From Haliotis cracherodii (taxonomy: Eukaryota), in NCBI RefSeq assembly GCF_022045235.1, contig NW_027266330.1, forward strand, positions 31,682,001-31,746,000: a DNA stretch of 64,000 nt, written 5' to 3'. Positions 5,472 through 47,612 of this stretch are shown here, one piece after another. The number at the start of each line of letters is the position of its first letter. Position 1 is the stretch's first letter. The notes under the pieces were generated by a model that saw only the letters and a program-made list of their open reading frames with translations, was not told where the DNA came from and ran no database searches. The translations under genes and the position numbers were made by a program.

Positions 5472-5479
5472 TGGAGTCC
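5472..5479 (+). repeat. 5' TSD of LINE copy A, TGGAGTCC (partner 9243-9250)
   Basis: 8-bp direct repeat flanking the insertion; single copy in empty units. Confidence 0.92.
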
Positions 5480-8400
5480 AAATAACTGGCATCCAAATAA
5501 CTCTCAAAAACCAAAAAATAAACATCATTAACGTATACCACTGGGCAGAACAAAAAATTCAAGCTGAGGACCTAAACAAATTACTGCAAATAAGCAATAA
5601 ATCAACTATATTCCTAGGAGACTTTAACGCTCACCACCCCACCTGGAGCATAGATGAAAAAATAGATAATCATGGCAAACTAATCTCTGAATGGATAGAA
5701 ACAAATAACCTTGTACTCCTAAACAATAACCAACCAACTAGATACGATAAGAAAAACCATAAAATGTCGGCTATCGACCTAACCATATGCACCTCAGATC
5801 TGGCCCAAAGTACTCAATGGGAAGTTCACGACGCCCCATTAGGTAGTGACCACTTCCCTATAAACATTACCATAGGCAATACAAACGTTCCTACCCAAAC
5901 AGAAAACCTAGAACCAAAATTCAACTATAACCAAGCTAACTGGGACAAATTTCAGGATATCTGCAACCAAGCCAACCTAACCAAACTAGAAAATAAGGAC
6001 CCAGAAATCTACTGCAAAAACCTAACAGACTACATAATTAACGCAGCCAAAGCATCAATACCTTATAAAACAAATAACGTAGGCAAACCCTCGGTACCAT
6101 GGTGGAACGAGGAAATAGAACAAACTAGACGCAAACGTAAAACAGCCTTCAATAGAGCCAAACGCGACCATAACCATATAACGGTAGCTCACGAACTAAA
6201 CCACAAGGTCCAAAAACTAGTCAAAATAGCTAAAACCAAAGATTGGAAATTATTTTGTGAAGGAGTAAATAATCGCACAGATGCCAGAACAGTCTGGCGA
6301 AAAATCCACGCCATTAGAGGCTTAAAACGTCACAAAAAAACACCCAACATAAACAATTCAACCAACCCTACCGAAAAGGCAAATAACCTAGCAAACCACT
6401 TCTCGGCCATAAGCAGCAACAATAACTTCAGCGAAAAATTCCAACAAAAACTTAAAGCAGAAGCCAAACCTACTAAAGTACCAAATAATGATAACCTCGA
6501 AATAAACCAACCTTACTCAATGGAAGAACTCCAGTACGTACTCCAAAATAGGAAAAAGGGAACTGCCCCAGGACTAGACCTAACATCCTACCAAATAATC
6601 AAAAAACTCCCCCCCAACCTACTCCAGGCACTACTTAAACTATATAACCTAATCTATCAAAACGGACAGGTACCAACTCCCTGGAAACAGGCACTAGTCA
6701 TCCCTATCCCTAAACCCGATAAACCAACTAACCAGGCAAATTCTTATAGACCAATATCCCTAACCTCAAACCTATGTAAAGTAATGGAATCTATGGCCAA
6801 AAATAGACTACAACACTACTTAACTCAAAATAACATCATAAACACAGATCAAAGCGGTTTCACTCCTGGCCGCTCAACCTTAGATAATCTCGCCCGACTA
6901 GAACAGGACATAAAGACGGGACAACTCAACAAACAATACACAACAGGCATCTTTCTGGATTTCTCCAAAGCATTCGACATGGTTTGGCACAACGGGCTAA
7001 TACAAAAACTTAAAAAAATAGGACTAAAAGGACAAATAATAAACTACATTCAGGACTTTCTAAACGAACGTAAAATAACAGTGGGGATAGACCATACTCT
7101 ATCGGACCAGTGTCCCCTAGAAAATGGCACTCCCCAGGGCAGTATCCTCAGCCCCACACTCTTTAATATAATGATAAACGATCTCTTCGAGGGCCTATCC
7201 CCTAAAGTAAACACATCCAAATTCGCGGATGATGGAGCCCTTTGGATCCGCACAAAAAGTATTAATATGGCCCAAAATTTACTCCAAAAATCTCTTAATA
7301 AAATACAACAATGGGCTGACAAATGGGGCTTCTCCCTTAACTCAGAAAAAACAACAGGAATAGTATTCAAACATAAAAACATGAAACCCGCCTCCCCAAT
7401 TCTCCAGCTAAACAACCAAACAATCAAATTTCAAAAACAAACCAAATTCTTAGGACTTATCTTCGATCAACATCTCACCTGGGATGCTCACATCCAAAAC
7501 CTAACAACTAAATGCAGTAAAGACCTAAACACCCTAAGATGCCTCACTGGCTCAAACTGGGGAGCCTCCAAAGATACCCTCCTCTCACTCTACATATCAC
7601 TAATTAGATCAAAACTAGACTACGGCTGCGCCATATACAACACCCTAAACAACTCTCTATCTAAAAAACTTGACTCAATACAATATCAGGCTCTCAAACT
7701 AATTACACGCACCCAACATGGCACCTCCTACACTTCACTCCAGGCCTTAACAGGAGAAATGCCACTAAGTCTACGCAGGGAACAGCTAAGCTTAAATTTC
7801 TGGGCCGCATCCCAATCAAACCCTCTCATCCAAAACCTAATAAACCAAAATATCAGCCCCAAAAACCAAGCTCTAGCTCGTAAACACCCCTTACTTACCC
7901 CAATATCTCAAAGAATAACAAACTACCTAAATGAACACCAAATTAAAAATCTTAAACAAAACTGCAAACAATCAAATATCTTCACCCCTAAACTTAAAAT
8001 ACCCAAAATAGACACAACACTAGCTAGCCAAATAAATAAACAAACCGACCCAAACATAGCTAAAACCACCACACTAGCTTACATACACGAAAATTGGCCA
8101 AATTGGTGTCACATTTACACGGACGGATCTTCAGATCCGACCTCCAAACACACAGGTTTCGGAGTCCATACCACACAACCAACTAAAACTACACAATCCT
8201 TCCGACTCCCAAACAACCAATCAATATTCACGGCAGAACTAATGGGCATGGCCTCAGCCCTCCATAGTCAAGAATCCAAAAACCACAATAAAATCCTAAT
8301 ACTTACCGACTCCCTAAGTGGACTGCAAGCCCTCCAAAACAAAAATACCAAAAACCGACCTAAATTAATAAATCTAATACTTAAAAGCTCCAACGACCTA

Positions 8401-9242
8401 ACTAACGCAGGCAAACAAATAACTTTCTTGTGGATACCCGCCCACGTAGGAATATACGGTAATGAAAACGCCGATAAGGCAGCTAAACTATCCCTCAAAA
8501 TCCCAGAAATAAGCTTAAACTTACCCATCTCAAAATCAGAAATTAAAAGTGTAAATAAGCAAAAAATCACCAAAAAATGGCATAACCTATATCTAAACTC
8601 AAATAGCCAAATCAAAAAAGTACTCAGCAAACCACTAACCAAACCAAAAATTCACCATCCATCAAAAAAAATCGACAGAGTAATCACTAAACTCCAAACA
8701 GGACACACCAACCTAAATAACCACCTAAAAAAAATAAAAAAACATACTACAGGTAACTGCCCACACTGCAAACAACTAGAAAACCCAGAACACGCACTCA
8801 TCTACTGCACACACTACCTAACACATCGAACCGCATTACAAACCACCCTCAATCTAAACCAGGCTCTCACTCTAGAAGCAATACTAAACCCACAAAATAA
8901 ACTAGAAAACTTCAAGGCCTTAGGCGTATTCTTAATCAAAACGGAACTAATAAAACGCATCTAAAAACACTATAATCCACCAAATCAAAATTACATAAAC
9001 ACACAAAAATCCACCATACCCAGCTCCCTTAGTTCTCCTCCCTTACCCCATCGGCATCTATTCCAAATCTCAAAATTCCCAAATTCTATATAAGCAACCC
9101 CTAAAGCCCCCTCTTGGGTTGCACACACCACTTTCGCCCCTTTCGGAAACACATTAAATGGCCTGGCCGGGCCCGTGTGCGAAATACGCATCAGTCGGAA
9201 AGCGCACGTTAAATCTCCAAAGTAAGTAAGTAAGTAAGTAAG
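5480..9242 (+). mobile_element. I-group non-LTR retrotransposon copy A, 5'-truncated within the endonuclease domain, divergent subfamily
   Basis: Begins mid-APE domain (ITGIQITL...FLGDFNAHH); RT and RNase H ORF, 3' UTR, (AAGT)6 tail counting the shared T, 8-bp TSD. Confidence 0.96.
5482..8964 (+). CDS. Copy A ORF2, 5'-truncated: partial APE, RT, RNase H, C-terminal CCHC
   Basis: Frame is open upstream of the track's Met at 5764; motifs GDFNAHH, GSDHFPI, YRPISLTS, DFSKAFD, PQGSILSP, FADD, YTDGS, AEL, TDS, WIPAHVGIYGNENAD, CPHC..HALIYC. Confidence 0.93.
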   Translation: MTGIQITLKNQKINIINVYHWAEQKIQAEDLNKLLQISNKSTIFLGDFNAHHPTWSIDEKIDNHGKLISEWIETNNLVLLNNNQPTRYDKKNHKMSAIDLTICTSDLAQSTQWEVHDAPLGSDHFPINITIGNTNVPTQTENLEPKFNYNQANWDKFQDICNQANLTKLENKDPEIYCKNLTDYIINAAKASIPYKTNNVGKPSVPWWNEEIEQTRRKRKTAFNRAKRDHNHITVAHELNHKVQKLVKIAKTKDWKLFCEGVNNRTDARTVWRKIHAIRGLKRHKKTPNINNSTNPTEKANNLANHFSAISSNNNFSEKFQQKLKAEAKPTKVPNNDNLEINQPYSMEELQYVLQNRKKGTAPGLDLTSYQIIKKLPPNLLQALLKLYNLIYQNGQVPTPWKQALVIPIPKPDKPTNQANSYRPISLTSNLCKVMESMAKNRLQHYLTQNNIINTDQSGFTPGRSTLDNLARLEQDIKTGQLNKQYTTGIFLDFSKAFDMVWHNGLIQKLKKIGLKGQIINYIQDFLNERKITVGIDHTLSDQCPLENGTPQGSILSPTLFNIMINDLFEGLSPKVNTSKFADDGALWIRTKSINMAQNLLQKSLNKIQQWADKWGFSLNSEKTTGIVFKHKNMKPASPILQLNNQTIKFQKQTKFLGLIFDQHLTWDAHIQNLTTKCSKDLNTLRCLTGSNWGASKDTLLSLYISLIRSKLDYGCAIYNTLNNSLSKKLDSIQYQALKLITRTQHGTSYTSLQALTGEMPLSLRREQLSLNFWAASQSNPLIQNLINQNISPKNQALARKHPLLTPISQRITNYLNEHQIKNLKQNCKQSNIFTPKLKIPKIDTTLASQINKQTDPNIAKTTTLAYIHENWPNWCHIYTDGSSDPTSKHTGFGVHTTQPTKTTQSFRLPNNQSIFTAELMGMASALHSQESKNHNKILILTDSLSGLQALQNKNTKNRPKLINLILKSSNDLTNAGKQITFLWIPAHVGIYGNENADKAAKLSLKIPEISLNLPISKSEIKSVNKQKITKKWHNLYLNSNSQIKKVLSKPLTKPKIHHPSKKIDRVITKLQTGHTNLNNHLKKIKKHTTGNCPHCKQLENPEHALIYCTHYLTHRTALQTTLNLNQALTLEAILNPQNKLENFKALGVFLIKTELIKRI

Positions 9243-9375
9243 TGGAGTCCTTCACTGCATCTCAATCCGTGAGAACGAACACATCTACTTTCCAATTATC
9301 TAAATTTGGCGCTACTGAATTCCTGTAGTATTACATCCGACTGCATTCTAGTGTTGTGTCCGAAGGCCCTAGAAA

Positions 9376-9997
9376 ATGGATCCAGTTCAAGTTGCCATCA
9401 AGCTGAGACGACTCCTTATTGCCCACGACAATGCAGTGAAAGAGATCCTGACATTAGGTAAATATGAACTGTGCTCTTTTTCAGTCCCCTGCAAACATGG
9501 CAATATCGGTATCACACTGAATTTTAGAATTGAACAAAATAAAATGATATTGTTGTGAACACATTTACCGAGATTTCTAATTACCCGTTTTATTGTTTTC
9601 AGATACCCAAGTCTACTATCTGATGCGGAAGATGACAGCCAACTCCTCCAACAACTGCATAATCCGAGGTGAACAGCTGATCCAGAGACGATGGGTGCTG
9701 GAAGGTGTCAAGGAGATGTTTACCATCTACAGACAACTCAAGTGGCAAGAGGTGCAAGCCTGTGTAAACGCCATCACCAAAGATGCTCCTGGAGAGAGTG
9801 ATTTGGAGGCGGACTGGAATGCAGATACCTCTTTCAATGACGATGAAGCTTCCTTCACGGAACTCTTGTCCGACAGCTCATATAGTGAGGACGACGAAGA
9901 CCAGGGAGACCTATACAGCAACGACAGCAGCTACGATATGACGACTCTCAGTCGAGCTTTGTCTGTAGACGACAGTGCACTTCATAGAAACGCCTAA
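9376..9997 (+). CDS. Array gene copy 3 (separated from its TATA by LINE A), join(9376..9457,9603..9997)
   Basis: Intact frame; two private substitutions (S>P, S>L) in the acidic tail. Confidence 0.8.
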
Positions 9998-10216
9998 GGG
10001 AAATCACAAGTCCCATCCACATCAACTAGTGCTGCATTTACCTTGTTATTCATTTTTTGTTATTGTACACAAATGTTGCCTGACAGTGTGCAAAGGCATC
10101 CTATTATATTGTAAACCACATTTGTTTGTTGATGAATATCCTGAGGAAATAAATAATGAAGTCGATATTATAATCTTGATCATTTGCTGACACGCTCACG
10201 ACATCTTGAAGACATC

Positions 10217-10345
10217 NNNNNNNNNNNNNNNNNNNNNNNNNNNNNNNNNNNNNNNNNNNNNNNNNNNNNNNNNNNNNNNNNNNNNNNNNNNNNNNNNNNN
10301 NNNNNNNNNNNNNNNNNNNNNNNNNNNNNNNNNNNNNNNNNNNNN
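10217..10345. other. Assembly gap (N run)
   Basis: Ns at the position of the unit's (GA)n microsatellite. Confidence 0.99.
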
Positions 10346-11982
10346 ATCTCACAATACCAAGCCTTCGATCATTTTACTTGGTTCTGAGTATGGCAATCAT
10401 TCGCAGATATCGCCCTTAATCTATTCTTTGAAATAGGAAAAAGATACAGACTAATCAATTGAAATGAAACACATTTGGACATTAGGTATTGATGGAGAAG
10501 AAGTGATTCCAATGTAATGGTTGCACAATAACATTAAATACAGTTTGGAGCGTTGCAATTCGTTTGCCCGTATCCATGCCGATCCTATAGCAAAAGGATT
10601 TAGACAGACGAACCACAACCCCATATGATATTGATCTTAGAGACATATATGTCAGGTTGTATTTCATATTATCAGAGCATTTAATTGTTTCTCTTTCCTT
10701 TTGCAATGTACATACCCAAGTGCTTAAGGAGATAGTCATGCATGTTAAAAATTGTCAATGCACACAGCATGCAAGACAAAAGGAAATTGAAACATTGACA
10801 TCAACACAGGCCAAATAACATTTCTGATCCAAGTCAGCACTTGATGAATACTATTCCCCTGAAAGCACGAAAAAGTAAAGATCAGAATATCCTGACATGA
10901 AACAGTGGGCATCTTTCAAAAACAATGCTAAAACCGTGCTTATGTTTATCTAGCAACATACTCCAATTTACATCATGTGCTTTAACAGCATTCTGTATTC
11001 AAAGATATAAATCATGACACCGTGCTTTGTAATTCTCCCAAACACATGACAGTTATACACTGAAGATGATGTCTCTAGATCATTTAACACACATAAACTT
11101 TATTGTACATGCCTATTTATTTATTTATTTATATAGTAAGCTTTTAAGTACCCGACGTCCACCCAAAAGCTTTTAAGATGGTTAATATCCAGATACTTAA
11201 GCCAAATGAGCTGCTTCAATTATACCATGAGGATGGTATTCATCAAAAATAGTATTTGAAATGCTTCAAAACATACGTAAGACTGGTTGGGGAAATGGTC
11301 AGTTTAACATAGCATTCACGACCTCAAACAGATGTGTACAATAAGTTCTAGATTTGACTGTACATTTATTCACTTTGCCTTTGCCTACCACAGTAAGGAT
11401 TTTTTAGGATTGTGGACATGGTTTTCTGGGCTTTTTTAATTGAAACTAAACGTTCAGAGAAGCATCAGACGATTTCCAATCTGATAGAAGTTTCTGTGAC
11501 TTGGTTTCTGTGGATGCGAAAGTAACCACATCGGATTTTTAAGTAACACAATGTACTGCACCGTTTGATCAATCCCGATTTAATCAATTAACAATGATTG
11601 ATAATCCCTGCAGATAACAGGACTAGATTGGTTGAACTCTTCTCAGACCTCTCCCTTTATACGGAAACTTGTTTTGACAAGAAGTTGATTGGTTTCTCAA
11701 GTGGACAGTGAGATTCCTTTCGGATCAAAGCCGAATGAAGTTGCAGTGTAGCTTTGATCTCGCCACTGGCTTCGAAAATGCTCTCTTTGATCTATAAATC
11801 TCTACTACTATGTTTATACTAAGGGTAAGTATAAATGTTTTGCAAGGACTGGAGTCCTTCACTTCATCTCAATCCGTGAGAACGAACCCATCTACTTTCC
11901 AATTATCTAAATTTGGCGCTACTGAATTCCTGTAGTATTACATCCGACTGCATTCTAGTGTTGTGTCCGAAGGCCCTAGAAA

Positions 11983-12604
11983 ATGGATCCAGTTCAAGTT
12001 GCCATCAAGCTGAGACGACTCCTTATTGCCCACGACAATGCAGTGAAAGAGATCCTGACATTAGGTAAATATGAACTGTGCTCTTTTTCAGTCCCCTGCA
12101 AACATTGCAATATCGGTATCACACTGAATTTTAGAATTGAACAAAATAAAATGATATTGTTGTGAACACATTTACCGAGATTTCTAATTACCCGTTTTAT
12201 TGTTTTCAGATACCCAAGTCTACCATCTGATGCAGAAGATGACAGCTAACTCCTCCAACAACTGCATAATCCGAGGTGAACAGCTGATCCAGAGACGATG
12301 GGTGCTGGAAGGTGTCAAGGAGATGTTTACCATCTACAGACAACTCAAGTGGCAAGAGGTGCAAGCCTGTGTAAACGCCATCACCAAAGATGCTTCTGGA
12401 GAGAGTGATTCGGAGGCGGACTGGAATGCAGATACCTCTTTCAATGACGATGAAGCTTCCTTCACGGAACTCTTGTCCGACAGCTCATATAGTGAGGACG
12501 ACGAAGACCAGGGAGACCTATACAGCAACGACAGCAGCTACGATATGACGACTCTCAGTCGAGCTTTGTCTGTAGACGACAGTGCACTTCATAGAAACGC
12601 CTAA
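11983..12604 (+). CDS. Array gene copy 4, join(11983..12064,12210..12604)
   Basis: Same structure, intact. Confidence 0.85.
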
Positions 12605-14514
12605 GAGAAATCACAAGTCCCATCCACATCAACTAGTGCTGCATTTACCTTGTTATTCATTTTTTGTTATTGTACACAAATGTTGCCTGACAGTGTGCAA
12701 AGGGCATCCTATTATATTGTAAACCACATTTGTTTGTTGATGAATATGCTGAGGAAATAAATAATGAAGTCGATATTATAATCTTGATCATTTGCTGACA
12801 CGCTCACGACATCTTGAAGACATCATTCGTATAGAAAGTTTGTGAGAGAGAGAAAAAAAGGTTAATTTGAGATGGTATCTCACAATACCAAGCCTTCGAT
12901 CATTTTACTTGGTTCTGAGTATGGCAATCATTCGCAGATATCGTCCTTAATCTATTCTTTGAAATAGGAAAAGATACAGACTAATCAATTGAAATGAAAC
13001 ACATTAGGTATTGATGGAGAAGAAGAGATTCCAATGTAATGGTTGCACCATAACATTAAATACAGTTTGGAGTGTTGCAATTCGTTTGCCCGTATCCATG
13101 CCGATCCTATAGCAAAAGGATTTAGACAGACGAACCACAACCCCATATGATATTCATCTGAGAGAGATATATGCCAGGTTGTATTTCATATTATCAGAGC
13201 ATTTAATTGTTTCTCTTTCTTTTTGCAATGTACATGCCCAAGTGCTTAAGGAGAGAGTCATACATGTTAAAAAGTGTCAATGCACACAGCATGCAAAACA
13301 AAAGGAAATTGAAACATTGACATCAACACAGGCCAAATAACAGTTTTGATCCAAGTCAGCACTTGATGAATACTATTCCCCTGAAAGCACTAAAAAGTAA
13401 AGATCAGAATATCCTGACATGAAACAGTGGGCATCTTTCAAAAACAATGCTAACAACGTGCTTATGTTTATCTAGCAACATACTCCAATTTCCATCATGT
13501 GCTTTAACAGCATTCTGTATTCAAAGATATAAATCATGACACAGTGCTTTGTAATTCTCCCCAAAACATGACAGTTATACACTGAAGATGATGTCTCTAG
13601 ATCATTTAACACACATAAACTTTATTGTACATGCCTATTTATTTATATAGTAACCTTTTAAGTACCCGACGTCCACCCAAAAGCTTCTAAGATGGTAAAT
13701 ATCCAGATACTTAAGCCAAATGAGCTGCTTCAATTATACCATGATGATGGTATTCATCAAAAATAGTATTTGAAATGCTTCAAAACATACGTGCTGTATT
13801 TCGATCATTTAAGACGGGTTGGGAAAATGCTCAGATTAACATAGCATTTACGACCTCCAACAGATGTGTACAATAAGTTCCAGATTTGACTGTACATGTA
13901 TTCACTTTGCCTTTGCCTACCTGATTAAGGATTTTTTAGGATTGTGGACATGGTTTTCTCGGCTTTTTTAATTGAAACTAAACGTTCAGAGAAGCATCAG
14001 GCGATTTCCAAGCTGATAGAAGTTACTGTGACTTGGTTTCTGTGGAAGCGACAGTAACCACATCGGATTTTTAAGTAATACAATGTACTGCACCGTTTGA
14101 TCAATCACGATTTAATCAATTAACAATGATTGATAATCCCTGCAGATAACAGGACTAGATTGGTTGAACTCTTCTCAGACCTCTCCCTTTATACGGAAAC
14201 TTGTTTTGACAAGAAGTTGATTGGTTTCTCAAGTGGACAGTGAGATTCCTTTCGGATCAAAGCCGAATGAAGTTGCAGTGTAGCTTTGATCTCGCCACTG
14301 GCTTCGAAAATGCTCTCTTTGATCTATAAATCTCTACTACTATGTTTATACTAAGGGTCAGTATAAATGTTTTGCAAGGACTGGAGTCCTTCACTGCATC
14401 TCAATCCGTGAGAACGAACACATCTACTTTCCAATTATCTAAATTTGGCGCTACTGAATTCCTGTAGTATTACATCCGACTGCATTCTAGTGTTGTGTCC
14501 GAAGGCCCTAGAAA

Positions 14515-19462: not shown

Positions 19463-19473
19463 TGGAGTCCTTC
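19463..19473 (+). repeat. 5' TSD of LINE copy B, TGGAGTCCTTC (partner 25801-25811)
   Basis: 11-bp direct repeat flanking the element. Confidence 0.95.
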
Positions 19474-21725: not shown

Positions 21726-21744
21726 AATAAAAACTAAAAACTAA

Positions 21745-26555: not shown

Positions 26556-26795
26556 GGGAAATCACAAGTCCCATCCACATCAACTAGTGCTGCATTTACC
26601 TTGTTATTCATTTTTTGTTATTGTACACAAATGTTGCCTGACAGTGTGCAAAGGGCATCCTATTATATTGTAAACCACATTTGTTTGTTGATGAATATGC
26701 TGAGGAAATAAATAATGAAGTCGATATTATAATCTTGATCATTTGCTGACACGCTCACGACATCTTGGAGACATCATTCGCATAGAAAGTTTGTG

Positions 26796-26836
<41 letters not shown>

Positions 26837-33346: not shown

Positions 33347-33389
33347 AATAAAAACTAAAAACTAAATCACCAATCACCCGAAACCAATA

Positions 33390-36300
33390 ATGGAAGGACT
33401 AAATATTTTTCAGTGGAACGCCAACGGACTCACCTCCCACGGCCATGAACTAAAAACTAAATTTAAACTAAATAAAGGCCCTCACATTGCTTGTATACAG
33501 GAAACCAAATTCTCAAAAAAATCGAAATTCACACTACCTAACTACAACTCAGTTAGAACTGACAGAGCTAAACCGAAAACAAGAAGAGCCGCAGGAGGAC
33601 TAATCATATTTATCAGGGAAGATATAAATTACGAAGAAATAAAAATAGACACGCCAAACCTAGAAGCCAACGGCATTAAAATCACATTAAATAACCGAAA
33701 CATAAACATCATAAATATTTACCACTGGGCGGAACAAAAAGTCCAACCTGAGGATCTAAACAAACTACTCAAAATAAGCGATAAATCTACTATATTCCTA
33801 GGAGACTTTAACGCTCACCATCCTACATGGAGCATAGATGATAAAATAGATAATCATGGCAAATTAATCTCCGAATGGATAGAAACAAACGACCTAGTAC
33901 TCCTTAATAGCAACCAACCCACGAGGTACGATAAGATAAACCAAAAAATGTCGGCTATCGACCTAACCATATGCACCGCAGATCTAGCCCAAAGCACTCA
34001 ATGGGAAGTGCACGACGTCCCGCTAGGTAGCGACCACTTCCCCATAAACATAACCATAGGAAATACAAACGTACCAATCCAAACAGAAAACCAAGAACCA
34101 AAATTCCATTACAACAAAGCTAACTGGGACCAATTCCAAGATATCTGCAACGAAGCTAACTTAAACGAAATAGAAAATAATGATCCAGAAACCTATTGTA
34201 AAAACCTAACAGACTATATAATAAACGCAGCCAAAACCTCCATCCCCTTCAAAACATCTAAGACAGGCAAACCGACGGTACCATGGTGGAATGAGGAAAT
34301 AGAACAGACTAGACGAAAACGTAAATCAGCCTTCAATAAAGCAAAACGCGACTACAAATATTTAAACATAGCCCACGAACTAAACCACCAGGTTCAAAAA
34401 CTAGTCCAAATAGCCAAAAGTAGAGACTGGAAAAAATTCTGCGAAGGTATAAATAACCGTACAGATGCCAGAACGGTCTGGCGCAAAATCCACGCCATTA
34501 GAGGCTTAAAACGACATAAAAAAACCCCTAACATTAACAACTCAACCAACCCCGCCCAAAAAGCAAATAATCTCGCCAACCACTTTTCGGCCGTTAGCAG
34601 TAACAGCAACTTCAGCCAAAAATTCCAAGATAAACTTAAAACAGAAAACAAACCCACAAAAGAACCAAACAATAACAATCTAGAAATAAATCAACCCTAC
34701 ACAATGGAGGAGCTCCTCTACGTAATCCAAAACAGGAAAAAGGGCACAGCCCCAGGATTAGACCTAACCTCTTACCAAATAATTAAAAAACTCCCCCTAA
34801 AACTGCTCCAGGCACTACTCAAACTATACAATCTCATCTACCTAAACGGACAGGTTCCTACTCCCTGGAAACAGGCCCTAGTCATACCAATCCCTAAACC
34901 TAATAAACCAGCTAATCAAGCTAACTCATATAGACCAATATCCCTAACTTCAAACTTATGTAAAGTAATGGAATCAATGGCTAAAAATAGATTACAACAT
35001 CACTTAACCCAAAATAACACCATAAACCCAGATCAAAGCGGTTTCACTCCTGGCCGCTCAACCCTAGATAACCTCGCCCGACTAGAACAAGATATTAAGA
35101 CAGGACAAATAAATAAACAATATACCACAGGCATCTTCTTAGACTTCTCTAAAGCTTTCGACATGGTATGGCACGATGGGCTAATACAAAAACTTAAAAA
35201 AATAGGACTCAAAGGTCAGATAATAAACTACATCCAGGACTTCCTAAACAATCGTAAAATAACCGTGTGTATAGACCAAACTCTATCGGACCAATGTCCC
35301 CTAGAAAATGGCACTCCACAGGGCAGTATCCTCAGCCCCACCCTCTTCAATATAATGATAAACGATCTATTCGAGGGCCTATCCCCTAAAGTAAACACAT
35401 CAAAATTCGCGGATGATGGAGCCATCTGGATCCGCACTAAAAGCATGAAAATGGCCCAAAATTTACTCCAAAAATCTCTTAATAAAATACAACAATGGGC
35501 TGACAAATGGGGCTTCTCCCTTAACTCAGAAAAAACAACAGGAATAGTATTCAAACATAAAAACATGAAACCCGCCTCCCCAATCCTCCAGCTAAACAAT
35601 CAAACAATCAAATTTCAAAAACAAACCAAATTCTTAGGACTTATTTTCGATGAACATCTCACCTGGGATGCTCACATCCAAAACCTAACAACTAAATGCA
35701 GTAAAGACCTAAACACCCTAAGATGCCTAACTGGCTCTAACTGGGGAGCCTCCAAAGATACTCTCCTCTCTCTCTACATATCCCTAATTAGATCAAAACT
35801 AGACTACGGCTGCGCCATATACAACACCCTAAACAACTCTCTATCTAAAAAACTTGACTCAATACAATATCAGGCTCTCAAACTCATTACACGCACCCAA
35901 CATGGCACCTCCTACACCTCACTTCAGGCCTTAACAGGAGAAATGCCACTAAGTCTACGCAGGGAACAGCTAAGCTTAAATTTCTGGGCCGCGTCCCAAT
36001 CAAACCCTCTCATCCAAAACTTAATAAACCAAAACATCAGCCCTAAAAACCAAGCCCTAGCTCGTAAACACCCCTTACTTACCCCAATATCCCAAAGAAT
36101 AACAAACTACCTAAATGAACACCAAATTAAAAATCTTAAACAAAACTGCAAACAATCAAATATCTTCACCCCTAAACTTAAAATACCCAAAATAGACACA
36201 ACACTAGCTAGCCAAATAAATAAACAAACCGACCCAAACATAGCTAAAACTACCACACTAGCATACATACACAAAAATTGGCCAAATTGGTGTCACATTT

Positions 36301-37148
36301 ACACGGACGGATCCTCAGATCCGACCTCCAAACACACGGGTTTCGGAGTCCATACCACACAACCAACTAAAACCACACAATCCTTCCGACTCCCAAATAA
36401 CCAATCAATATTCACGGCCGAACTAATGGGCATGGCCTCAGCCCTCCACAATCAAGAATCAAAAAACAACCAAAAAATCCTAATACTTACTGACTCCCTA
36501 AGTGGACTGCAAGCCCTCCAAAACAAAAATACCAAAAACCGACCTAAATTAATAAATCAAATACTTAAAAGCTCCAACGACCTAACAAAAGCAGGCAAAC
36601 AAATAACCTTCTTGTGGATACCCGCCCACGTAGGAATATACGGTAATGAAAACGCCGATAAAGCAGCTAAACTATCCCTCAAAATCCCAGAAATAAGCTT
36701 AAACTTACCCATCTCAAAATCAGAAATTAAAAGTGTAAACAAACAAAAAATCACAAAAAAATGGCATAACCTATATCTAAACTCAAATAGCCAAATCAAA
36801 AGAGTGCTCAGCAAACCACTAACCAAACCAAAAATTCTCCATCCATCCAAAAAAATCGACAGAGTAATCACTAAACTCCAAACAGGACACACCAACCTAA
36901 ATAACCACCTAAAAAAAATTAAAAAACACACTACAGGTAACTGCCCACACTGCAAACAACCAGAAACCCCAGAACACGCACTCATCCACTGCACACACTA
37001 CCTAACACATCGAACCGCATTACAAACCACCCTCAATCTAAACAAGGCTCTCACTCTAGAAGCAATACTAAACCCACAAAATAAACTAGAAAACTTCAAG
37101 GCCTTAGGCGTATTCTTAATCAAAACGGAACTAATAAAACGCATCTAA
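33390..37148 (+). CDS. Copy C ORF2, complete 1252 aa APE-RT-RNase H-CCHC
   Basis: ATG-initiated MEGLNIFQWNANG; all catalytic motifs present. Confidence 0.96.
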   Translation: MEGLNIFQWNANGLTSHGHELKTKFKLNKGPHIACIQETKFSKKSKFTLPNYNSVRTDRAKPKTRRAAGGLIIFIREDINYEEIKIDTPNLEANGIKITLNNRNINIINIYHWAEQKVQPEDLNKLLKISDKSTIFLGDFNAHHPTWSIDDKIDNHGKLISEWIETNDLVLLNSNQPTRYDKINQKMSAIDLTICTADLAQSTQWEVHDVPLGSDHFPINITIGNTNVPIQTENQEPKFHYNKANWDQFQDICNEANLNEIENNDPETYCKNLTDYIINAAKTSIPFKTSKTGKPTVPWWNEEIEQTRRKRKSAFNKAKRDYKYLNIAHELNHQVQKLVQIAKSRDWKKFCEGINNRTDARTVWRKIHAIRGLKRHKKTPNINNSTNPAQKANNLANHFSAVSSNSNFSQKFQDKLKTENKPTKEPNNNNLEINQPYTMEELLYVIQNRKKGTAPGLDLTSYQIIKKLPLKLLQALLKLYNLIYLNGQVPTPWKQALVIPIPKPNKPANQANSYRPISLTSNLCKVMESMAKNRLQHHLTQNNTINPDQSGFTPGRSTLDNLARLEQDIKTGQINKQYTTGIFLDFSKAFDMVWHDGLIQKLKKIGLKGQIINYIQDFLNNRKITVCIDQTLSDQCPLENGTPQGSILSPTLFNIMINDLFEGLSPKVNTSKFADDGAIWIRTKSMKMAQNLLQKSLNKIQQWADKWGFSLNSEKTTGIVFKHKNMKPASPILQLNNQTIKFQKQTKFLGLIFDEHLTWDAHIQNLTTKCSKDLNTLRCLTGSNWGASKDTLLSLYISLIRSKLDYGCAIYNTLNNSLSKKLDSIQYQALKLITRTQHGTSYTSLQALTGEMPLSLRREQLSLNFWAASQSNPLIQNLINQNISPKNQALARKHPLLTPISQRITNYLNEHQIKNLKQNCKQSNIFTPKLKIPKIDTTLASQINKQTDPNIAKTTTLAYIHKNWPNWCHIYTDGSSDPTSKHTGFGVHTTQPTKTTQSFRLPNNQSIFTAELMGMASALHNQESKNNQKILILTDSLSGLQALQNKNTKNRPKLINQILKSSNDLTKAGKQITFLWIPAHVGIYGNENADKAAKLSLKIPEISLNLPISKSEIKSVNKQKITKKWHNLYLNSNSQIKRVLSKPLTKPKILHPSKKIDRVITKLQTGHTNLNNHLKKIKKHTTGNCPHCKQPETPEHALIHCTHYLTHRTALQTTLNLNKALTLEAILNPQNKLENFKALGVFLIKTELIKRI

Positions 37149-37437
37149 AACCATAATAACCTACCAAATCAAAATCACAAAAACAAACAATCATCCACCA
37201 TACCCAGCTCCCTTAGTTCTCCTCCCCAACCCCATCGGCATCTATTCCAAATCTCAAAATTCCCAAATTCTATATAAGCAACCCCTAAAGCCCCCTCTTG
37301 GGTTGCACAGACCACCCTCGCCCCTTTCGGAAACACAATAAATGGCCTGGCCGGGCCCGTGTGCGAAATACGCATCAGTCGGAAAGCGCACGTTAAATCT
37401 CCAAAGTAAGTAAGTAAGTAAGTAAGTGGAGTCCTTC

Positions 37438-37584
37438 CAGTTGCAGTTTGTACCCCAAGCGAGCAACACCTCCCAAGCCAGCACAGAGCATTGCCTGATA
37501 GCCAGCCAAGGAGAACTCCAACATCGGTAATTATCACGTCATCCTTTCAGCCTTATTCACATACTCTTACAATCACTCTCACCG
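37438..37584 (+). mobile_element. 147-bp 5'-end fragment of a variant subfamily of the same LINE
   Basis: Aligns to 37673-37810 with several substitutions and an ~8-bp insertion (CCTTTCAGCCTTATTC vs CCTTATTC). Confidence 0.9.
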
Positions 37585-37672
37585 TTTGTTTGTTTGTTGT
37601 TTAACGCCGAACCTAGCAGTGTTCCAGCTACAGGACAGCGGTTTGAAAATAAACGAGTCTTGGCCAGACAAT
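37585..37672 (-). mobile_element. Probable SINE 3'-end fragment, antisense
   Basis: Minus strand ends ...GGCGTTAAACAACAAACAAACAAA (CGTTAAA plus microsatellite tail); resembles, from memory, gastropod (abalone-type) SINE 3' ends; not found elsewhere in the window. Confidence 0.6.
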
Positions 37673-38303
37673 CAGTTGCAGTTTGTACTCCCAGCGAGCA
37701 ACACTTCCCAAGCCAGCACAGAGCATTGCCTGATAGCCAGCCAAGGAAACTCCATCATCGGTAATTATCACGTTATCCTTATTCACATACTCTTAAAATC
37801 ACTCTCACCGAATTAATCATAAAACCCCTAAATCCTTAAAAAACAACAACACTAAATAACCAACACCTTATCCTACCCAATCTCCCTAACACAGCTCGCA
37901 CTCATTTCTACTCACACCCACGCCCACCACTCAAACACACCCTTTGACCCAACTCCTAAAAGCAAAAAACACCTAATCCCCCCTTCTCCTAAACACAACG
38001 CTCGCTCTTTCCTACTCACCACCCACGCCCACCACTCACATACCTCCACTCCTTCGACTAAATATCTCTTAATCCCCGCTTTCCACTTGTCTCACCTTAT
38101 CCCAGCCTTCCAGAATCAAACTTAATCTTCAATAAATAATCCATTTCCCAAACCCTCCTACTAAAACCAACAACAAATAACCACCGCAACCTCCTCCGCC
38201 TCCTAAACACAAATCACCAAGTAAAAACAACAAACCAACTCACCTCCCCAAAACCACCACCACTCACCACAACACACGCTCTCCAACACAACACCCAAAC
38301 AAT

Positions 38304-39929
38304 ATGACTGACACCCGCAACGCCACACTCGCAGACATTCCAGCTCCTTACTCACCCACGCCTGCGGAAGCGCACAACACTTCTGGGAGGTCACTCGAAA
38401 ACATCGTCCCGACCGAGTATGGCGAAAACACGACATACACCACCCCAACCAAACCAGCTAACTCGCCACCACAAAACACCAAAAAACGCAAACTCGACAC
38501 ATCCACTCCACCTCCATCGCCAACACCCTCCCCGGCCGCCTTCCTCACCACCTTCGCCCTCTACTTCTTCTCAGCAGGCTCAGGCACCACTCTCTCACTA
38601 GAACTTTCGGCAGACAAAATAGGACTTTGGTTCAAAAGACAAAAAATAAATTACAACAATATTAAAAAAGCCAACAAAGGATACCAGATAATCTTTCCTA
38701 ACCGAGAATCTTACAACGCAGCAAATAAAATAACTCAAATATTCCACGTCACGGTAATCAAACAAACACCTAATTGGCAACAATATACCCGAGGCGTAAT
38801 AAGGGTTAACCCAAGGGAAACAACTGAGGACTTACAATTATACTCTCTAGAAGCTAACATAAACCAAGACCAAAACCCTCAACCCCTAATCACCAGCACG
38901 CGCAGAATAACCTCAACTAGAAACGGAAAAACGGTCCCAACCTCCATTGTCATAATCAACTTTAAAAAAACCGCTAAATTCCCTGAAGCCCCCAAACACA
39001 TATCCTTCGGAGCCCACACAAACTTAGAAGTCAAACCCTATATAAAGCAGGTTAAGCAATGTTCAAAGTGCCTCAAATACAACCACACTGCTTCCCAATG
39101 CACCTACCCTAAAACTAAATGTAAAAAATGCGCACAAACAGACTGCCCAGGCACATGCACACCCTGGTGCATCCACTGCAAATCCACCCAACACACTTCA
39201 CTTTCAAACCAATGCCCACACAGACACACACTCACCCAGCAGGCCAACAAACACATAAACATAGAAACGGCTAAAATCCAAACACGAAAATTTGCTACAC
39301 CTGCATCTAAACCACTCCTCCCTACACCACACCCAAACACCATCCCACAAACAAACACCACACCCATAACCGACAGCTCTGTCTGGGACCCCTACCGAGA
39401 AACCGCACCCACCTCACACACACAAGCAGCCACTCAACCAACCACGAACCCTCCCAAAACATCAACCCCCGCATGCAAAACAAACCTCAAAATGACCACC
39501 ACAACACGACCCTCATCCAAGCACCCTACAGCCCATATGGCAACAACGCTCTCCCACAAGCAAGCACAACAACAAAACACAAACACTAAGAAAACATCAG
39601 CTACACCCATCCCGCCAACACCTTCACAACCCTCCACATCACATGCCTCCCCCATGGAAACTCAACCAGCTAAACCTAATCCAACCCATGACGAAGATTT
39701 CTCCACTACTGAGGAAACAATAGACACTACTCCAACTAAAACAAACCAAACTTCCCAACCAGCCAACACCCCAAACCTAAATAACCTCACCTTACTCCTA
39801 GCATATATGCATAGTCAAAACTCACCAAAAGCTAGTATGGAATCCTTCCACAAAGTAGCTTTCAATCTAAAATTAACCGATCTTCCCTTCTTCCTCTTTA
39901 ACCTCCATCTAAAAGAACTCACCGAATAA
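38304..39929 (+). CDS. Copy D ORF1 (541 aa)
   Basis: Nearly identical to copy B ORF1. Confidence 0.9.
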   Translation: MTDTRNATLADIPAPYSPTPAEAHNTSGRSLENIVPTEYGENTTYTTPTKPANSPPQNTKKRKLDTSTPPPSPTPSPAAFLTTFALYFFSAGSGTTLSLELSADKIGLWFKRQKINYNNIKKANKGYQIIFPNRESYNAANKITQIFHVTVIKQTPNWQQYTRGVIRVNPRETTEDLQLYSLEANINQDQNPQPLITSTRRITSTRNGKTVPTSIVIINFKKTAKFPEAPKHISFGAHTNLEVKPYIKQVKQCSKCLKYNHTASQCTYPKTKCKKCAQTDCPGTCTPWCIHCKSTQHTSLSNQCPHRHTLTQQANKHINIETAKIQTRKFATPASKPLLPTPHPNTIPQTNTTPITDSSVWDPYRETAPTSHTQAATQPTTNPPKTSTPACKTNLKMTTTTRPSSKHPTAHMATTLSHKQAQQQNTNTKKTSATPIPPTPSQPSTSHASPMETQPAKPNPTHDEDFSTTEETIDTTPTKTNQTSQPANTPNLNNLTLLLAYMHSQNSPKASMESFHKVAFNLKLTDLPFFLFNLHLKELTE

Positions 39930-39948
39930 AATAAAAACTAAAAACTAA

Positions 39949-42900
39949 ATCACCAATCACCCGAACCCAATATTCGAAGGACTAAATATTTTTCAGTGGA
40001 ACGCCAACGGACTCACCTCCCACGGCCATGAACTAAAAACTAAATTTAAACTAAATAAAGGCCCTCACATTGCTTGTATACAGGAAACCAAATTCTCAAA
40101 AAAATCGAAATTCACACTACCTAACTACAACTCAGTTAGAACTGACAGAGCTAAACCGAAAACAAGAAGAGCCGCAGGAGGACTAATCATATTTATCAGG
40201 GAAGATATAAATTACGAAGAAATAAAAATAGACACGCCAAACCTAGAAGCCAACGGCATTAAAATCACATTAAATAACCGAAACATAAACATCATAAATA
40301 TTTACCACTGGGCGGAACAAAAAGTCCAACCTGAGGATCTAAACAAACTACTCAAAATAAGCGATAAATCTACTATATTCCTAGGAGACTTTAACGCTCA
40401 CCATCCTACATGGAGCATAGATGATAAAATAGATACTCATGGCAAATTAATCTCCGAATGGATAGAAACAAACGACCTAGTACTCCTTAATAGCAACCAA
40501 CCCACGAGGTACGATAAGATAAACCAAAAAATGTCGGCTATCGACCTAACCATATGCACCGCAGATCTAGCCCAAAGCACTCAATGGGAAGTGCACGACG
40601 TCCCGCTAGGTAGCGACCACTTCCCCATAAACATAACCATAGGAAATACAAACGTACCAATCCAAACAGAAAACCAAGAACCAAAATTCCATTACAACAA
40701 AGCTAACTGGGACCAATTCCAAGATATCTGCAACGAAGCTAACTTAAACGAAATAGAAAATAATGATCCAGAAACCTATTGTAAAAACCTAACAGACTAT
40801 ATAATAAACGCAGCCAAAACCTCCATCCCCTTCAAAGTATCTAAGACAGGCAAACCGACGGTACCATGGTGGAATGAGGAAATAGAACAGACTAGACGAA
40901 AACGTAAATCAGCCTTCAATAAAGCAAAACGCGACTACAAATATTTAAACATAGCCCACGAACTAAACCACCAGGTTCAAAAACTAGTCCAAATAGCCAA
41001 AAGTAGAGACTGGAAAAAATTCTGCGAAGGTATAAATAACCGTACAGATGCCAGAACGGTCTGGCGCAAAATCCACGCCATTAGAGGCTTAAAACGACAT
41101 AACAAAACCCCTAACATTAACAACTCAACCAACCCCGCCCAAAAAGCAAATAATCTCGCCAACCACTTTTCGGCCGTTAGCAGTAACAGCAACTTCAGCC
41201 AAAAATTCCAAGATAAACTTAAAACAGAAAACAAACCCACAAAAGAACCAAACAATAACAATCTAGAAATAAATCAACCCTACACAATGGAGGAGCTCCT
41301 CTACGTAATCCAAAACAGGAAAAAGGGCACAGCCCCAGGATTAGACCTAACCTCTTACCAAATAATTAAAAAACTCCCCCTAAAACTGCTCCAGGCACTA
41401 CTCAAACTATACAATCTCATCTACCTAAACGGACAGGTTCCTACACCCTGGAAACAGGCCCTAGTCATACCAATCCCTAAACCTAATAAACCAGCTAATC
41501 AAGCTAACTCATATAGACCAATATCCCTAACTTCAAACTTATGTAAAGTAATGGAATCAATGGCTAAAAATAGATTACAACATTACTTAACCCAAAATAA
41601 CACCATAAACCCAGATCAAAGCGGTTTCACTCCTGGCCGCTCAACCCTAGATAACCTCGCCCGACTAGAACAAGATATTAAGACAGGACAACTAAATAAA
41701 CAATATACCACAGGCATCTTCTTAGACTTCTCTAAAGCTTTCGACATGGTATGGCACGATGGGCTAATACAAAAACTTAAAAAAATAGGACTCAAAGGTC
41801 AGATAATAAACTACATCCAGGACTTCCTAAACAATCGTAAAATAACCGTGTGTATAGACCAAACTCTATCGGACCAATGTCCCCTAGAAAATGGCACTCC
41901 ACAGGGCAGTATCCTCAGCCCCACCCTCTTCAATATAATGATAAACGATCTATTCGAGGGTCTATCCCCTAAAGTAAACACATCAAAATTCGCGGATGAT
42001 GGAGCCATCTGGATCCGCACTAAAAGCATGAAAATGGCCACAAATCTACTCCAAAAATCTCTTAATAAAATACAACAATGGGCTGACAAATGGGGCTTCT
42101 CCCTTAACTCAGAAAAAACAACAGGAATAGTATTCAAACATAAAAACATGAAACCCGCCTCCCCAATCCTCCAGCTAAACAACCAAACAATCAAATTTCA
42201 AAAACAAACCAAATTCTTAGGACTTATTTTCGATGAACATCTCACCTGGGATGCTCACATCCAAAACCTAACAACTAAATGCAGTAAAGACCTAAACACC
42301 CTAAGATGCCTAACTGGCTCTAACTGGGGAGCCTCCAAAGATACTCTCCTCTCTCTCTACATATCCCTAATTAGATCAAAACTAGACTACGGCTGCGCCA
42401 TATACAACACCCTAAACAACTCTCTATCCAAAAAACTTGACTCAATACAATATCAGGCTCTCAAACTCATTACACGCACCCAACATGGCACCTCCTACAC
42501 CTCACTTCAGGCCTTAACAGGAGAAATGCCACTAAGTCTACGCAGGGAACAGCTAAGCTTAAATTTCTGGGCCGCGTCCCAATCAAACCCTCTCATCCAA
42601 AACTTAATAAACCAAAACATCAGCCCTAAAAACCAAGCTCTAGCTCGTAAACACCCCTTACTTACCCCAATATCCCAAAGAATAACAAACTACCTAAATG
42701 AACACCAAATTAAAAATCTTAAACAAAACTGCAAACAATCAAATATCTTCACCCCTAAACTTAAAATACCCAAAATAGACACAACACTAGCTAGCCAAAT
42801 AAATAAACAAACCGACCCAAACATAGCTAAAACTACCACACTAGCATACATACACAAAAATTGGCCAAATTGGTGTCACATTTACACGGACGGATCCTCA

Positions 42901-43731
42901 GATCCGACCTCCAAACACACGGGTTTCGGAGTCCATACCACACAACCAACTAAAACCACACAATCCTTCCGACTCCCAAATAACCAATCAATATTCACGG
43001 CCGAACTAATGGGCATGGCCTCAGCCCTCCACAATCAAGAATCCAAAAACAACCAAAAAATCCTAATACTTACTGACTCCCTAAGTGGACTACAAGCCCT
43101 CCAAAACAAAAATACCAAAAACCGACCTAAATTAATAAATCAAATACTTAAAAGCTCCAACGACCTAACAAAAGCAGGCAAACAAATAACCTTCTTGTGG
43201 ATACCCGCCCACGTAGGAATATACGGTAATGAAAACGCCGATAAAGCAGCTAAACTATCCCTTAAAATCCCAGAAATAAGCTTAAACTTACCCATCTCAA
43301 AATCAGAAATTAAAAGTGTAAACAAACAAAAAATCACAAAAAAATGGCATAACCTATATCTAAACTCAAATAGCCAAATCAAAAGAGTGCTCAGCAAACC
43401 ACTAACCAAACCAAAAATTCTCCATCCATCAAAAAAAATCGACAGAGTAATCACTAAACTCCAAACAGGACACACCAACCTAAATAACCACCTAAAAAAA
43501 TTTAAAAAACACACTACAGGTAACTGCCCACACTGCAAACAACCAGAAACCCCAGAACACGCACTCATCCACTGCACACACTACCTAACACATCGAACCG
43601 CATTACAAACCACCCTCAATCTAAACAAGGCTCTCACTCTAGAAGCAATACTAAACCCACAAAATAAACTAGAAAACTTCAAGGCCTTAGGCGTATTCTT
43701 AATAAAAACGGAACTAATAAAACGCATCTAA
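39949..43731 (+). CDS. Copy D ORF2, AUG-less start (TTC at 39973)
   Basis: Same configuration as copy B; open through the APE domain into the track's 40531 ORF. Confidence 0.9.
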   Translation: MTNHPNPIFEGLNIFQWNANGLTSHGHELKTKFKLNKGPHIACIQETKFSKKSKFTLPNYNSVRTDRAKPKTRRAAGGLIIFIREDINYEEIKIDTPNLEANGIKITLNNRNINIINIYHWAEQKVQPEDLNKLLKISDKSTIFLGDFNAHHPTWSIDDKIDTHGKLISEWIETNDLVLLNSNQPTRYDKINQKMSAIDLTICTADLAQSTQWEVHDVPLGSDHFPINITIGNTNVPIQTENQEPKFHYNKANWDQFQDICNEANLNEIENNDPETYCKNLTDYIINAAKTSIPFKVSKTGKPTVPWWNEEIEQTRRKRKSAFNKAKRDYKYLNIAHELNHQVQKLVQIAKSRDWKKFCEGINNRTDARTVWRKIHAIRGLKRHNKTPNINNSTNPAQKANNLANHFSAVSSNSNFSQKFQDKLKTENKPTKEPNNNNLEINQPYTMEELLYVIQNRKKGTAPGLDLTSYQIIKKLPLKLLQALLKLYNLIYLNGQVPTPWKQALVIPIPKPNKPANQANSYRPISLTSNLCKVMESMAKNRLQHYLTQNNTINPDQSGFTPGRSTLDNLARLEQDIKTGQLNKQYTTGIFLDFSKAFDMVWHDGLIQKLKKIGLKGQIINYIQDFLNNRKITVCIDQTLSDQCPLENGTPQGSILSPTLFNIMINDLFEGLSPKVNTSKFADDGAIWIRTKSMKMATNLLQKSLNKIQQWADKWGFSLNSEKTTGIVFKHKNMKPASPILQLNNQTIKFQKQTKFLGLIFDEHLTWDAHIQNLTTKCSKDLNTLRCLTGSNWGASKDTLLSLYISLIRSKLDYGCAIYNTLNNSLSKKLDSIQYQALKLITRTQHGTSYTSLQALTGEMPLSLRREQLSLNFWAASQSNPLIQNLINQNISPKNQALARKHPLLTPISQRITNYLNEHQIKNLKQNCKQSNIFTPKLKIPKIDTTLASQINKQTDPNIAKTTTLAYIHKNWPNWCHIYTDGSSDPTSKHTGFGVHTTQPTKTTQSFRLPNNQSIFTAELMGMASALHNQESKNNQKILILTDSLSGLQALQNKNTKNRPKLINQILKSSNDLTKAGKQITFLWIPAHVGIYGNENADKAAKLSLKIPEISLNLPISKSEIKSVNKQKITKKWHNLYLNSNSQIKRVLSKPLTKPKILHPSKKIDRVITKLQTGHTNLNNHLKKFKKHTTGNCPHCKQPETPEHALIHCTHYLTHRTALQTTLNLNKALTLEAILNPQNKLENFKALGVFLIKTELIKRI

Positions 43732-44138
43732 AACCATAATAACCTACCAAATCAAAATCACATAAACAAACAATCATCCACCATACCCAGCTCCCTTAGT
43801 TCTCCTCCCCAACCCCATCAGCATCTATTCCAAATCTCAAAATTCCCAAATTCTATATAAGCAACCCCTAAAGCCCCCTCTTGGGTTGCACAGACCACCC
43901 TCGCCCCTTTCGGAAACACATTAAATGGCCTGGCCGGGCCCGTGTGCGAAATACGCATCAGTCGGAAAGCGCACGTTAAATCTCCAAAGTAAGTAAGTAA
44001 GTAAGTGGAGTCCTTCACTGCATCTCAATCCGTGAGAACGAACACATCTACTTTCCAATTATCTAAATTTGGCGCTACTGAATTCCTGTAGTATTACATC
44101 CGACTGCATTCTAGTGTTGTGTCCGAAGGCCCTAGAAA

Positions 44139-45000: not shown

Positions 45001-45001
<1 letters not shown>

Positions 45002-45045: not shown

Positions 45046-45051
<6 letters not shown>

Positions 45052-47569: not shown

Positions 47570-47612
<43 letters not shown>

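Follow-up and report, generated by a model that had tools for sequence, protein, structure and literature searches.

A young, dispersed LINE with I-group architecture is probably guided to its insertion sites by a TATA-box-like motif

The tandem array and its LINE copies

The 64,000-nucleotide stretch of Haliotis cracherodii DNA analysed here (the window, G000:C67:31682001-31746000) is part of a tandem array of a unit of approximately 2.55 kb, which extends over positions 1..64000 on the + strand and, according to self-alignment of the unit, includes about 22 units. Four copies of a long interspersed nuclear element (LINE), named E1 to E4, interrupt the array at one and the same base of the unit. 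The LINE is young, high-copy and dispersed in the genome, has the architecture of the I group, and its integration is probably steered by a motif that resembles a TATA box and not by the array sequence.

The entire array is made up of approximately 47 units at a single locus (C67:31.61-31.765 Mb), as counted from 41 empty and six occupied target sites. Each unit contains two TATA boxes, a predicted transcription start site (TSS) and an orphan open reading frame (ORF) of two exons. In the reference empty unit, the sequence of the proximal TATA box is TATAAA (49116..49121, +), and its first T is positioned 20 nt before the insertion nick, in the same geometry as at dispersed targets of the LINE. 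The distal box, also TATAAA (49079..49084, +), is located 37 bp upstream of the proximal one. The target, which upon insertion becomes the target-site duplication (TSD), is TGGAGTCCTTC (49136..49146, +), the bottom strand being nicked before 49136 and the top strand after 49146. It marks position 1 of the unit, 133 nt upstream of the unit ATG, and every unit of the array contains GTATAAATG at exactly the 20-nt TATA distance from TGGAGTCCTTC. The first transcribed nucleotide of metazoan core promoters follows the TATA box at a regular spacing, from which position 49147, an A in the context TCA+1CTG, is predicted to be the host +1, at 31 nt from the first T of the TATA.

The 3' ends of the four LINE copies (9242, 25800, 37426 and 44005) carry (AAGT)n tails that adjoin TGGAGTCCTTC at unit position 1, all on the + strand, as stated in the initial annotation of this DNA. 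E1 (5480..9242, +) is 5'-truncated at element position ~2815 and is flanked by the 8-bp TSD TGGAGTCC (5472-5479 and 9243-9250). E2 (19474..25800, +) starts at the inner 5' monomer, GCAGTTTG, and has a TSD of 11 bp (19463-19473 and 25801-25811), with the host TATA upstream of it at 19443-19448. E3 (32387..37426, +), 5'-truncated from element position ~1533, is joined to unit position 1502; approximately 1.06 kb of the unit, the TATA included, is missing upstream of it, and only the right-hand copy of its target is present, which it has in common with E4. This 11-bp target copy (37427..37437, +) is the sole spacer between the tail of E3 and the 5' end of E4, and the two elements form a head-to-tail tandem. 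E4 (37438..44005, +) is full length, with two 5' monomers, the initiator-like 5' end CAGTTGCAGTTTG and a TSD of 11 bp, the right copy of which is at 44006-44016. The initial annotation called the copies clearly different in sequence. This describes E1, which is 91.4% identical to E4, and the diagnostic variants, which differ, but not E2 and E3, which are 99.8% and 99.4% identical to E4. E1 represents an older or diverged subfamily.

ORF1 of E4 (38304..39929, +) encodes 541 residues. Inspection of its translation by eye shows three Cys/His motifs close to the C-terminal half, two of them CX2CX4HX4C knuckles and the third a variant; a Pfam search with ORF1 returned no match. ORF2 (39949..43731, +) has 1,260 open codons, which contain an APE endonuclease domain (residues 16-227), a reverse transcriptase (RT, 509-760), an RNase H (977-1103) and a C-terminal zinc motif, and the Pfam matches above cut-off in it are Exo_endo_phos/Exo_endo_phos_2, RVT_1 and RNase_H. 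The ORF2 frame is open from 39949, 20 nt past the ORF1 stop, and from that stop to halfway through the APE domain (39929-40531) there is no ATG. Therefore, translation of ORF2 must begin unconventionally, by reinitiation or at a non-AUG codon. In E2, ORF1 is at 20100-21725 (+) and ORF2 (+) ends at 25527; the latter is listed from the ATG at 22327, and its frame start is near 21745 when extrapolated from E4. The 5' untranslated region of the LINE is built from monomers of approximately 235-240 bp, each opening with GCAGTTTGTAC, two of which are present in many copies (37438-37920 and 19474-19610 in the window). The outer and inner monomers of E4 are about 89% alike, and E2 begins exactly at the inner type, which suggests that each monomer may act as a start site.

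Apart from units, the window consists of nothing but these four elements, which all occupy one of approximately 2,550 possible positions, and chance is thus excluded. The non-random choice of target noted initially is borne out, and so is the independence of the insertions. Alignments and inspection of the sequence give different 5' junctions for E1 to E4 and TSDs of 8 or 11 bp. Two more copies reside in the array outside the window, L031 approximately 55 kb upstream and L036 approximately 14 kb downstream; with L036, which has a TSD of 0-1 bp, and with L031 left out, the copies with a visible 5' junction display five distinct 5' ends. The kinship of copies was determined by counting differences over the last 1,417 bp. 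E4 has a single difference from copies on C25, C18 and C7; L031 differs at one position from a copy on C11, from which E2 differs at four; and E3 has eight differences from a copy on C1. Among themselves, the array copies E2, E3, E4 and L031 have 4-15 differences, and no variant private to the array was found in this region.

The units are 98-99.9% identical to one another, so the array is clearly homogenised, and E2, E3 and E4 share 99.4-99.8% identity. Both would be expected if one or two ancestral insertions had been multiplied by unequal crossing-over or gene conversion and their 5' junctions had been altered later by deletions. We consider this extremely unlikely, since the entire family is equally young and dispersed copies are just as similar, the TSDs and 5' ends differ as described above, and every array copy has closer relatives on other chromosomes. 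Furthermore, E2 has neither the CAGTT prefix nor the outer monomer seen in E4, a state that does not result from a simple deletion. 3' transduction or homing, by means of read-through RNA from copies in the array, was also considered and rejected, because none of the dispersed copies continues into array sequence beyond its tail and the copies in the array are not a lineage of their own.

Genome-wide distribution and the TATA-like motif

The last 30 nt of the element together with the tail occur 1,628 times in the genome as exact matches, on many contigs. Only six of these occurrences (0.4%) continue into TGGAGTCCTTC, the four in the window together with L031 and L036, and all six junctions are inside this one array on C67. 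The 41 empty target sites are likewise all within the array. In a sample of 60 dispersed loci, the flanks bear no relation to the array target, and no consensus next to the nick was seen among dispersed sites. The shorter combination of tail and GGAGT was absent genome-wide outside the six array sites, and the downstream sequence is thus not what is recognised; a preference for a downstream motif was rejected on the same grounds.

The initial annotation interpreted the array copies as a site-specific lineage, and it named the tabulation of genomic 3' flanks as the analysis that could refute this. According to that interpretation, the endonuclease would recognise TGGAGTCCTTC and use the gene array as a dedicated safe harbour, in the manner of R1 and R2 in rDNA. 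Six precise insertions in one array, at the same base and in the same orientation, do resemble such elements, which are characterised by identical 3' junctions in independent insertions. The great majority of copies in one target sequence, the other characteristic of R1/R2/Tx1-like elements, is not observed, as 99.6% of the 1,628 3' ends lie elsewhere, in flanks that are unrelated to the array wherever copies were sampled. A lineage dedicated to the array is a most improbable explanation, and its specificity for TGGAGTCCTTC is refuted by the tabulation.

A common property of the insertion sites is found upstream of the nick. Empty sites were reconstructed for dispersed 5'-truncated copies with a findable TSD, and in 18 of them the TSD measures 8 bp or more. 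Of these 18 copies, 11 have a strict TATA(A/T)A motif that starts at -18 to -21 from the beginning of the TSD, and 14 have one under a relaxed definition. As background, locus flanks contain the strict motif in 1.6% and the relaxed motif in 3.9% of 11-nt windows, which gives P = 5e-16 and 4e-17, respectively. The motif is always in the sense orientation of the element and almost never occurs elsewhere between -60 and -1. When 1-4 nt of microhomology between tail and target are allowed for, the spacing from TATA to nick becomes 20 +/- 1 nt. The TATAAA of the array unit, at -20 to -15, obeys the same rule. The TSDs are mostly 10-13 bp long, and the top-strand nick is positioned approximately 11 nt beyond the bottom-strand nick.

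Full-length copies provide a second view of the same geometry from their 5' ends. There are 271 monomer starts genome-wide, belonging to approximately 195 elements. A search for TATAWA 10-40 nt upstream of the start of the 5' monomer returned 79 matches at approximately 59 sites, and in 44 of these 59 the first T of the TATA precedes GCAG by 31-39 nt. Where the 5-nt CAGTT prefix is present, as in most copies, the first base of the element is approximately 27-34 nt from the TATA, and in E2, which has no prefix, it is 31 nt away. A control with the gap shifted to 41-71 nt gave 15 matches, mostly in one repeat family with a second TATA, and an antisense control (TTTATA) gave nine, nearly all of which overlap a sense TATA.

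The association could have arisen after insertion, if only the copies behind a TATA were expressed, amplified or retained, and a captured TATA could indeed favour the further amplification of full-length copies. However, the signal is strongest in copies of 0.06-1.5 kb that are 5'-truncated, non-autonomous and unable to propagate. Moreover, no two sites have the same sequence between TATA and TSD, so the TATA was not co-mobilised with the element. Selection after insertion is very unlikely to have produced the pattern.

At least four dispersed repeat families with a TATATA of their own have been struck repeatedly at equivalent positions (for example L039, L045, L049, L001, L017 and L023), and the array is thus one among several multi-copy TATA targets. 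One of the dispersed repeat families has two TATA motifs 24 bp apart and, like the array unit, has been struck only behind the proximal one.

Proposed mechanism and recognition of the TATA

The geometry of truncated and full-length insertions shows where the two strands are cut. The bottom strand is nicked 20 +/- 1 nt past the first T of a sense TATA(A/T)A, and the nick primes reverse transcription on the (AAGU)n tail of the element RNA. The top strand is cut approximately 11 nt further, at +31 from the first T of the TATA, which in the array unit falls exactly before the A of TCACTG. Because every unit has its TATA at the same distance from TGGAGTCCTTC, independent insertions fall on the same base. 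A full-length copy would place its initiator-like CAGTT approximately 31 nt from the host TATA and thereby rebuild a TATA-initiator (TATA-Inr) core promoter for RNA polymerase II (Pol II), a process that may be called promoter capture; in E2, the first base of the element occupies the predicted +1 position. The geometry of promoter capture is a property of the integration step, because truncated copies that were dead on arrival obey the TATA rule as well.

The TATA and the regenerated TSD would be left intact upstream of a new copy, and the landmark could be used again. Such reuse of the same TATA would explain head-to-tail tandems separated by a single TSD. Including the E3-TSD-E4 junction of the window, there are 24 head-to-tail junctions genome-wide, corresponding to approximately 12% of full-length 5' ends. 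The spacers in them are approximately 5-16 bp, most have the length of a TSD, and some are equal to TSDs of known TATA-directed repeat targets. A triple tandem is implied on C5 by two junctions 6.5 kb apart (C5:30599400 and C5:30605897, the latter within L030, G000:C5:30604435-30607740), the spacers of which are nearly alike and read CTCCGTATACA and, in a shorter form, CCGTATACA.

Several points weigh against guidance by the TATA motif in this form. The sample with resolved TSDs is small (18), and four of the 18 sites are without a clear TATA. A strict TATAWA is in range of only about 30% of full-length 5' ends. The benefit of promoter capture is deduced from geometry alone, and the LINE also possesses its own 5' monomers. 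Finally, the motif does not account for the intensity with which the array is used. Extrapolation from the flank background gives approximately 3.4 million TATAWA sites in the genome for approximately 1,000 motif-linked insertions, an average occupancy of about 0.03-0.05%. The proximal TATA of the array is occupied in six of approximately 47 units, an excess of roughly 250-400-fold, and its near-identical distal counterpart in none; a genome-wide search for a tail junction 20 nt downstream of the distal TATA of the unit found no example. Neither the excess nor the unused distal box is explained by the motif alone.

The contrast between the two boxes, together with the excess, indicates that something beyond the hexamer matters. 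One candidate is occupancy by TATA-binding protein (TBP) or the pre-initiation complex, or chromatin that is open in the germ line; another is that a protein of the element prefers a longer sequence than the hexamer, and a third is an inverted repeat at the nick. The last of these was considered because the nick of the array unit is located inside the 7+7 inverted repeat AAGGACT-GG-AGTCCTT (49128-49143 and equivalent positions). The array hotspot might then be set by sequence or structure around the nick, with the nearby TATA being incidental. A polymorphism at -6 (A or C) bears on this explanation, since C shortens the repeat to 5+5. The empty sites comprise 15 with A and 26 with C, and the A allele is present at all three occupied sites with a readable upstream flank versus 15 of 41 empty ones (P ~0.05), a sample of only three sites. 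Together with the unused distal TATA, this is in favour of the repeat. However, dispersed sites have neither such a repeat nor a consensus close to the nick, and yet have the TATA at a fixed distance and in a fixed orientation, so that we regard the inverted repeat as an unlikely determinant of the hotspot.

The TATA could be read directly by a protein of the element, either ORF2p outside the active site of its APE domain or ORF1p, with the nick two helical turns downstream and no host factor involved. Many dispersed targets resemble incidental TATA strings in repeats and microsatellite-like DNA rather than promoters, and the motif is present at 61-78% of sites, which is above the expectation if pre-initiation complexes without a TATA also served as targets. 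There is also a precedent in the RTE clade, the TSDs of which begin approximately 10 nt downstream of a T-stretch and for which binding by a LINE protein was proposed (PMC6007223). On the other hand, direct reading would have to distinguish two near-identical TATAAAT boxes 37 bp apart in each unit, of which one was hit six times and the other never, and would have to favour the array site over the average TATAWA by a factor of hundreds. No DNA-binding domain other than APE and the zinc motifs is recognisable in the element proteins. Direct reading is a serious possibility, to which we assign appreciably less than an even chance.

We tentatively favour docking of the LINE on an accessible TATA bound by TBP/TFIID, at a probability just short of even, because the motif alone cannot explain six hits versus none or the excess of hits. 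The course of events may be as follows, although we hold this more detailed version to be possible rather than likely. The ribonucleoprotein of the LINE would dock on the TBP-bound TATA of an accessible Pol II promoter. It would nick the template strand approximately 20 nt after the TATA, where melting begins, and the other strand at the TSS. Full-length copies would thus be born with a TATA-Inr promoter.

Further features of the locus, affiliation of the LINE and relation to known systems

The predicted ORFs of the array unit consist of 60 residues from the ATG, followed by a 134-residue frame with an acidic, Ser/Asp-rich tail (44139-44760 and in every unit). They matched no Pfam family, and their Atlas neighbours were only weak. 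A (GA)n-type stretch of the unit reads ERERER within the ORF at 44948-45139, and a minus-strand TATAAA (48947 to 48942) is present approximately 15-20 nt from GAACTC (48920-48925). The units belong to two similarity groups, with window positions 1-16913 approximately 94-98% and positions 25801-64000 at least 99% identical to the reference unit at 46575-49135, which indicates homogenisation sub-blocks inside the array. An assembly gap (10217..10345), which covers unit positions ~976-1052 in the unit alignment, is located 975 bp downstream of the E1 3' junction. Its flanks, unit positions 975 and 1053, are collinear and in the same orientation; the gap contains 129 N where approximately 77 bp are expected, and no junction is involved. 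Outside the window, consecutive empty sites at C67:31644084-31654954 are separated by 10.9 kb, which is not a multiple of the unit and may include an insertion or rearranged units, and another interval of the array, at C67:31672710-31679883, measures 7.2 kb.

The combination of APE, RT and RNase H in ORF2 with three Cys/His motifs in ORF1 confirms the I-group architecture recognised initially. Elements of the L1 group, to which the Tx1 clade belongs, are typically without RNase H. The RNase H domain and the ORF1 zinc motifs of the LINE led us to reject the Tx1 clade, an indirect exclusion. In a published classification, the I group comprises Ingi, I, Nimb, Loa, R1, Tad1, Loner as well as Outcast, RNase H is an I-group trait, and within the L1 group it is listed only for plant L1 and Proto1 (PMC4640811). 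A comparison of the APE domain with the PDB detected the endonuclease domains (EN) of TRAS1 (E = 1e-4, partial) and L1 (E = 3e-5), and R1Bm EN was absent at E <= 1. The 120 best homologues are unnamed or generically named, and the best of them are 40-58% identical. Some come from contigs deposited as symbiont metagenome-assembled genomes of lucinid clams, which hints at molluscan relatives of the LINE. In related elements from metagenome contigs (38-46% ORF2 identity), a 3' motif of the GTTAAAC/CGTAAAA/CGTTAAA type, similar to that of the LINE, is followed by a short family-specific microsatellite, namely (AAG)5 at L071:6950-6993, (ACT)4 at L072:2810-2847 and (ACG)6 at L075:5680-5709. The metagenome contigs (L067-L083) are too short to include flanking DNA, and TSDs were sought for L071 and L075 and were not found.

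The I factor and other insect LINEs have initiator-type internal promoters that start at CAGT. The H. cracherodii LINE resembles the I factor in its APE-RT-RNase H ORF2, the Cys/His zinc motifs of ORF1, the short-repeat 3' tail and the CAGT 5' end; to our knowledge, no TATA-guided choice of target has been reported for the I factor and its kin. The Drosophila long terminal repeat (LTR) elements 17.6, 297 and Tom insert into TATA-like sequences, and their integrases cut within the TATAT string. They share TATA-type targets with the LINE, whereas the LINE is cut in two helical turns downstream, by an APE-type nickase and target-primed reverse transcription. LINEs lose their upstream promoter with each move, for which internal promoters and co-transcription with a specific host gene are the known solutions. 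A nick measured from the TATA, which places the first base of the element at the TATA-defined start, would be a third solution if it is true. A literature search of incomplete coverage found no TATA-guided LINE and none that combines an (AAGT)n tail with this target, and the novelty of a TATA-guided LINE is probable, not certain.

Target-specific non-LTR elements have been reported from clades with a restriction-like endonuclease and from Tx1 and R1 (Kojima and Jurka 2015, PMC4640811). Like R1, R2 and Tx1-clade elements, the LINE joins a tandem multigene array at a constant nucleotide and builds head-to-tail tandems within the target. Unlike them, with nearly all copies in one target, it has 0.4% of its copies there, and the junction sequence is not conserved between targets. 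Repeated LINE insertions at one base of an array need not imply a dedicated site-specific lineage, which is a warning for annotation. Elements of the RTE clade, in which a T-stretch precedes the start of the TSD by approximately 10 nt (Nishiyama and Ohshima 2018, PMC6007223), are similar in that cleavage is measured from an upstream A/T-type motif and in the microhomology between the 3' microsatellite and the first bases of the TSD. The LINE differs from them in the motif, an oriented TATA(A/T)A instead of a T run, in the distance, 20 nt instead of about 10, and in being an RNase H-bearing element of the I group, and no promoter geometry has been proposed for RTE.

The TATA rule can be stated simply for guided insertion, as a motif followed by nicks at +20 and +31, and it is testable. 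It accounts for same-base hotspots in multi-copy TATA promoters, for the frequent head-to-tail LINE tandems and for a mutational bias against TATA promoters, because an insertion separates the TATA from the TSS. If docking on TBP is the correct explanation, TATA-driven gene arrays and other repeats would be recurrent landing pads and nurseries of tandem copies.

The closest parallels to guidance by a promoter landmark are TRE5-A, a non-LTR element of Dictyostelium, and the yeast LTR element Ty3, both of which insert at a set distance from Pol III genes via TFIIIB/TFIIIC (PMC3159450, PMC6101501). The position of insertion is determined in all three elements by distance and orientation from a promoter landmark and not by the sequence at the nick, and multi-copy targets are struck repeatedly. 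As is characteristic of TRE5-A and Ty3, the LINE keeps a constant distance and orientation with respect to an element of the core promoter, the first T of which is at -18 to -21 from the nick, always in the sense direction. In contrast to the two elements, the LINE has as its landmark a TATA motif of Pol II type, which the nick follows at a distance of 20 nt. Furthermore, the LINE lands between TATA and TSS, where it would disrupt the host gene instead of sparing it and would supply the promoter of the element. If guidance by the TATA is true, it would correspond, for Pol II, to the way in which TRE5-A and Ty3 are directed to Pol III genes, and if it proceeds through docking on TBP, the LINE would be the first non-LTR retrotransposon directed to Pol II core promoters.

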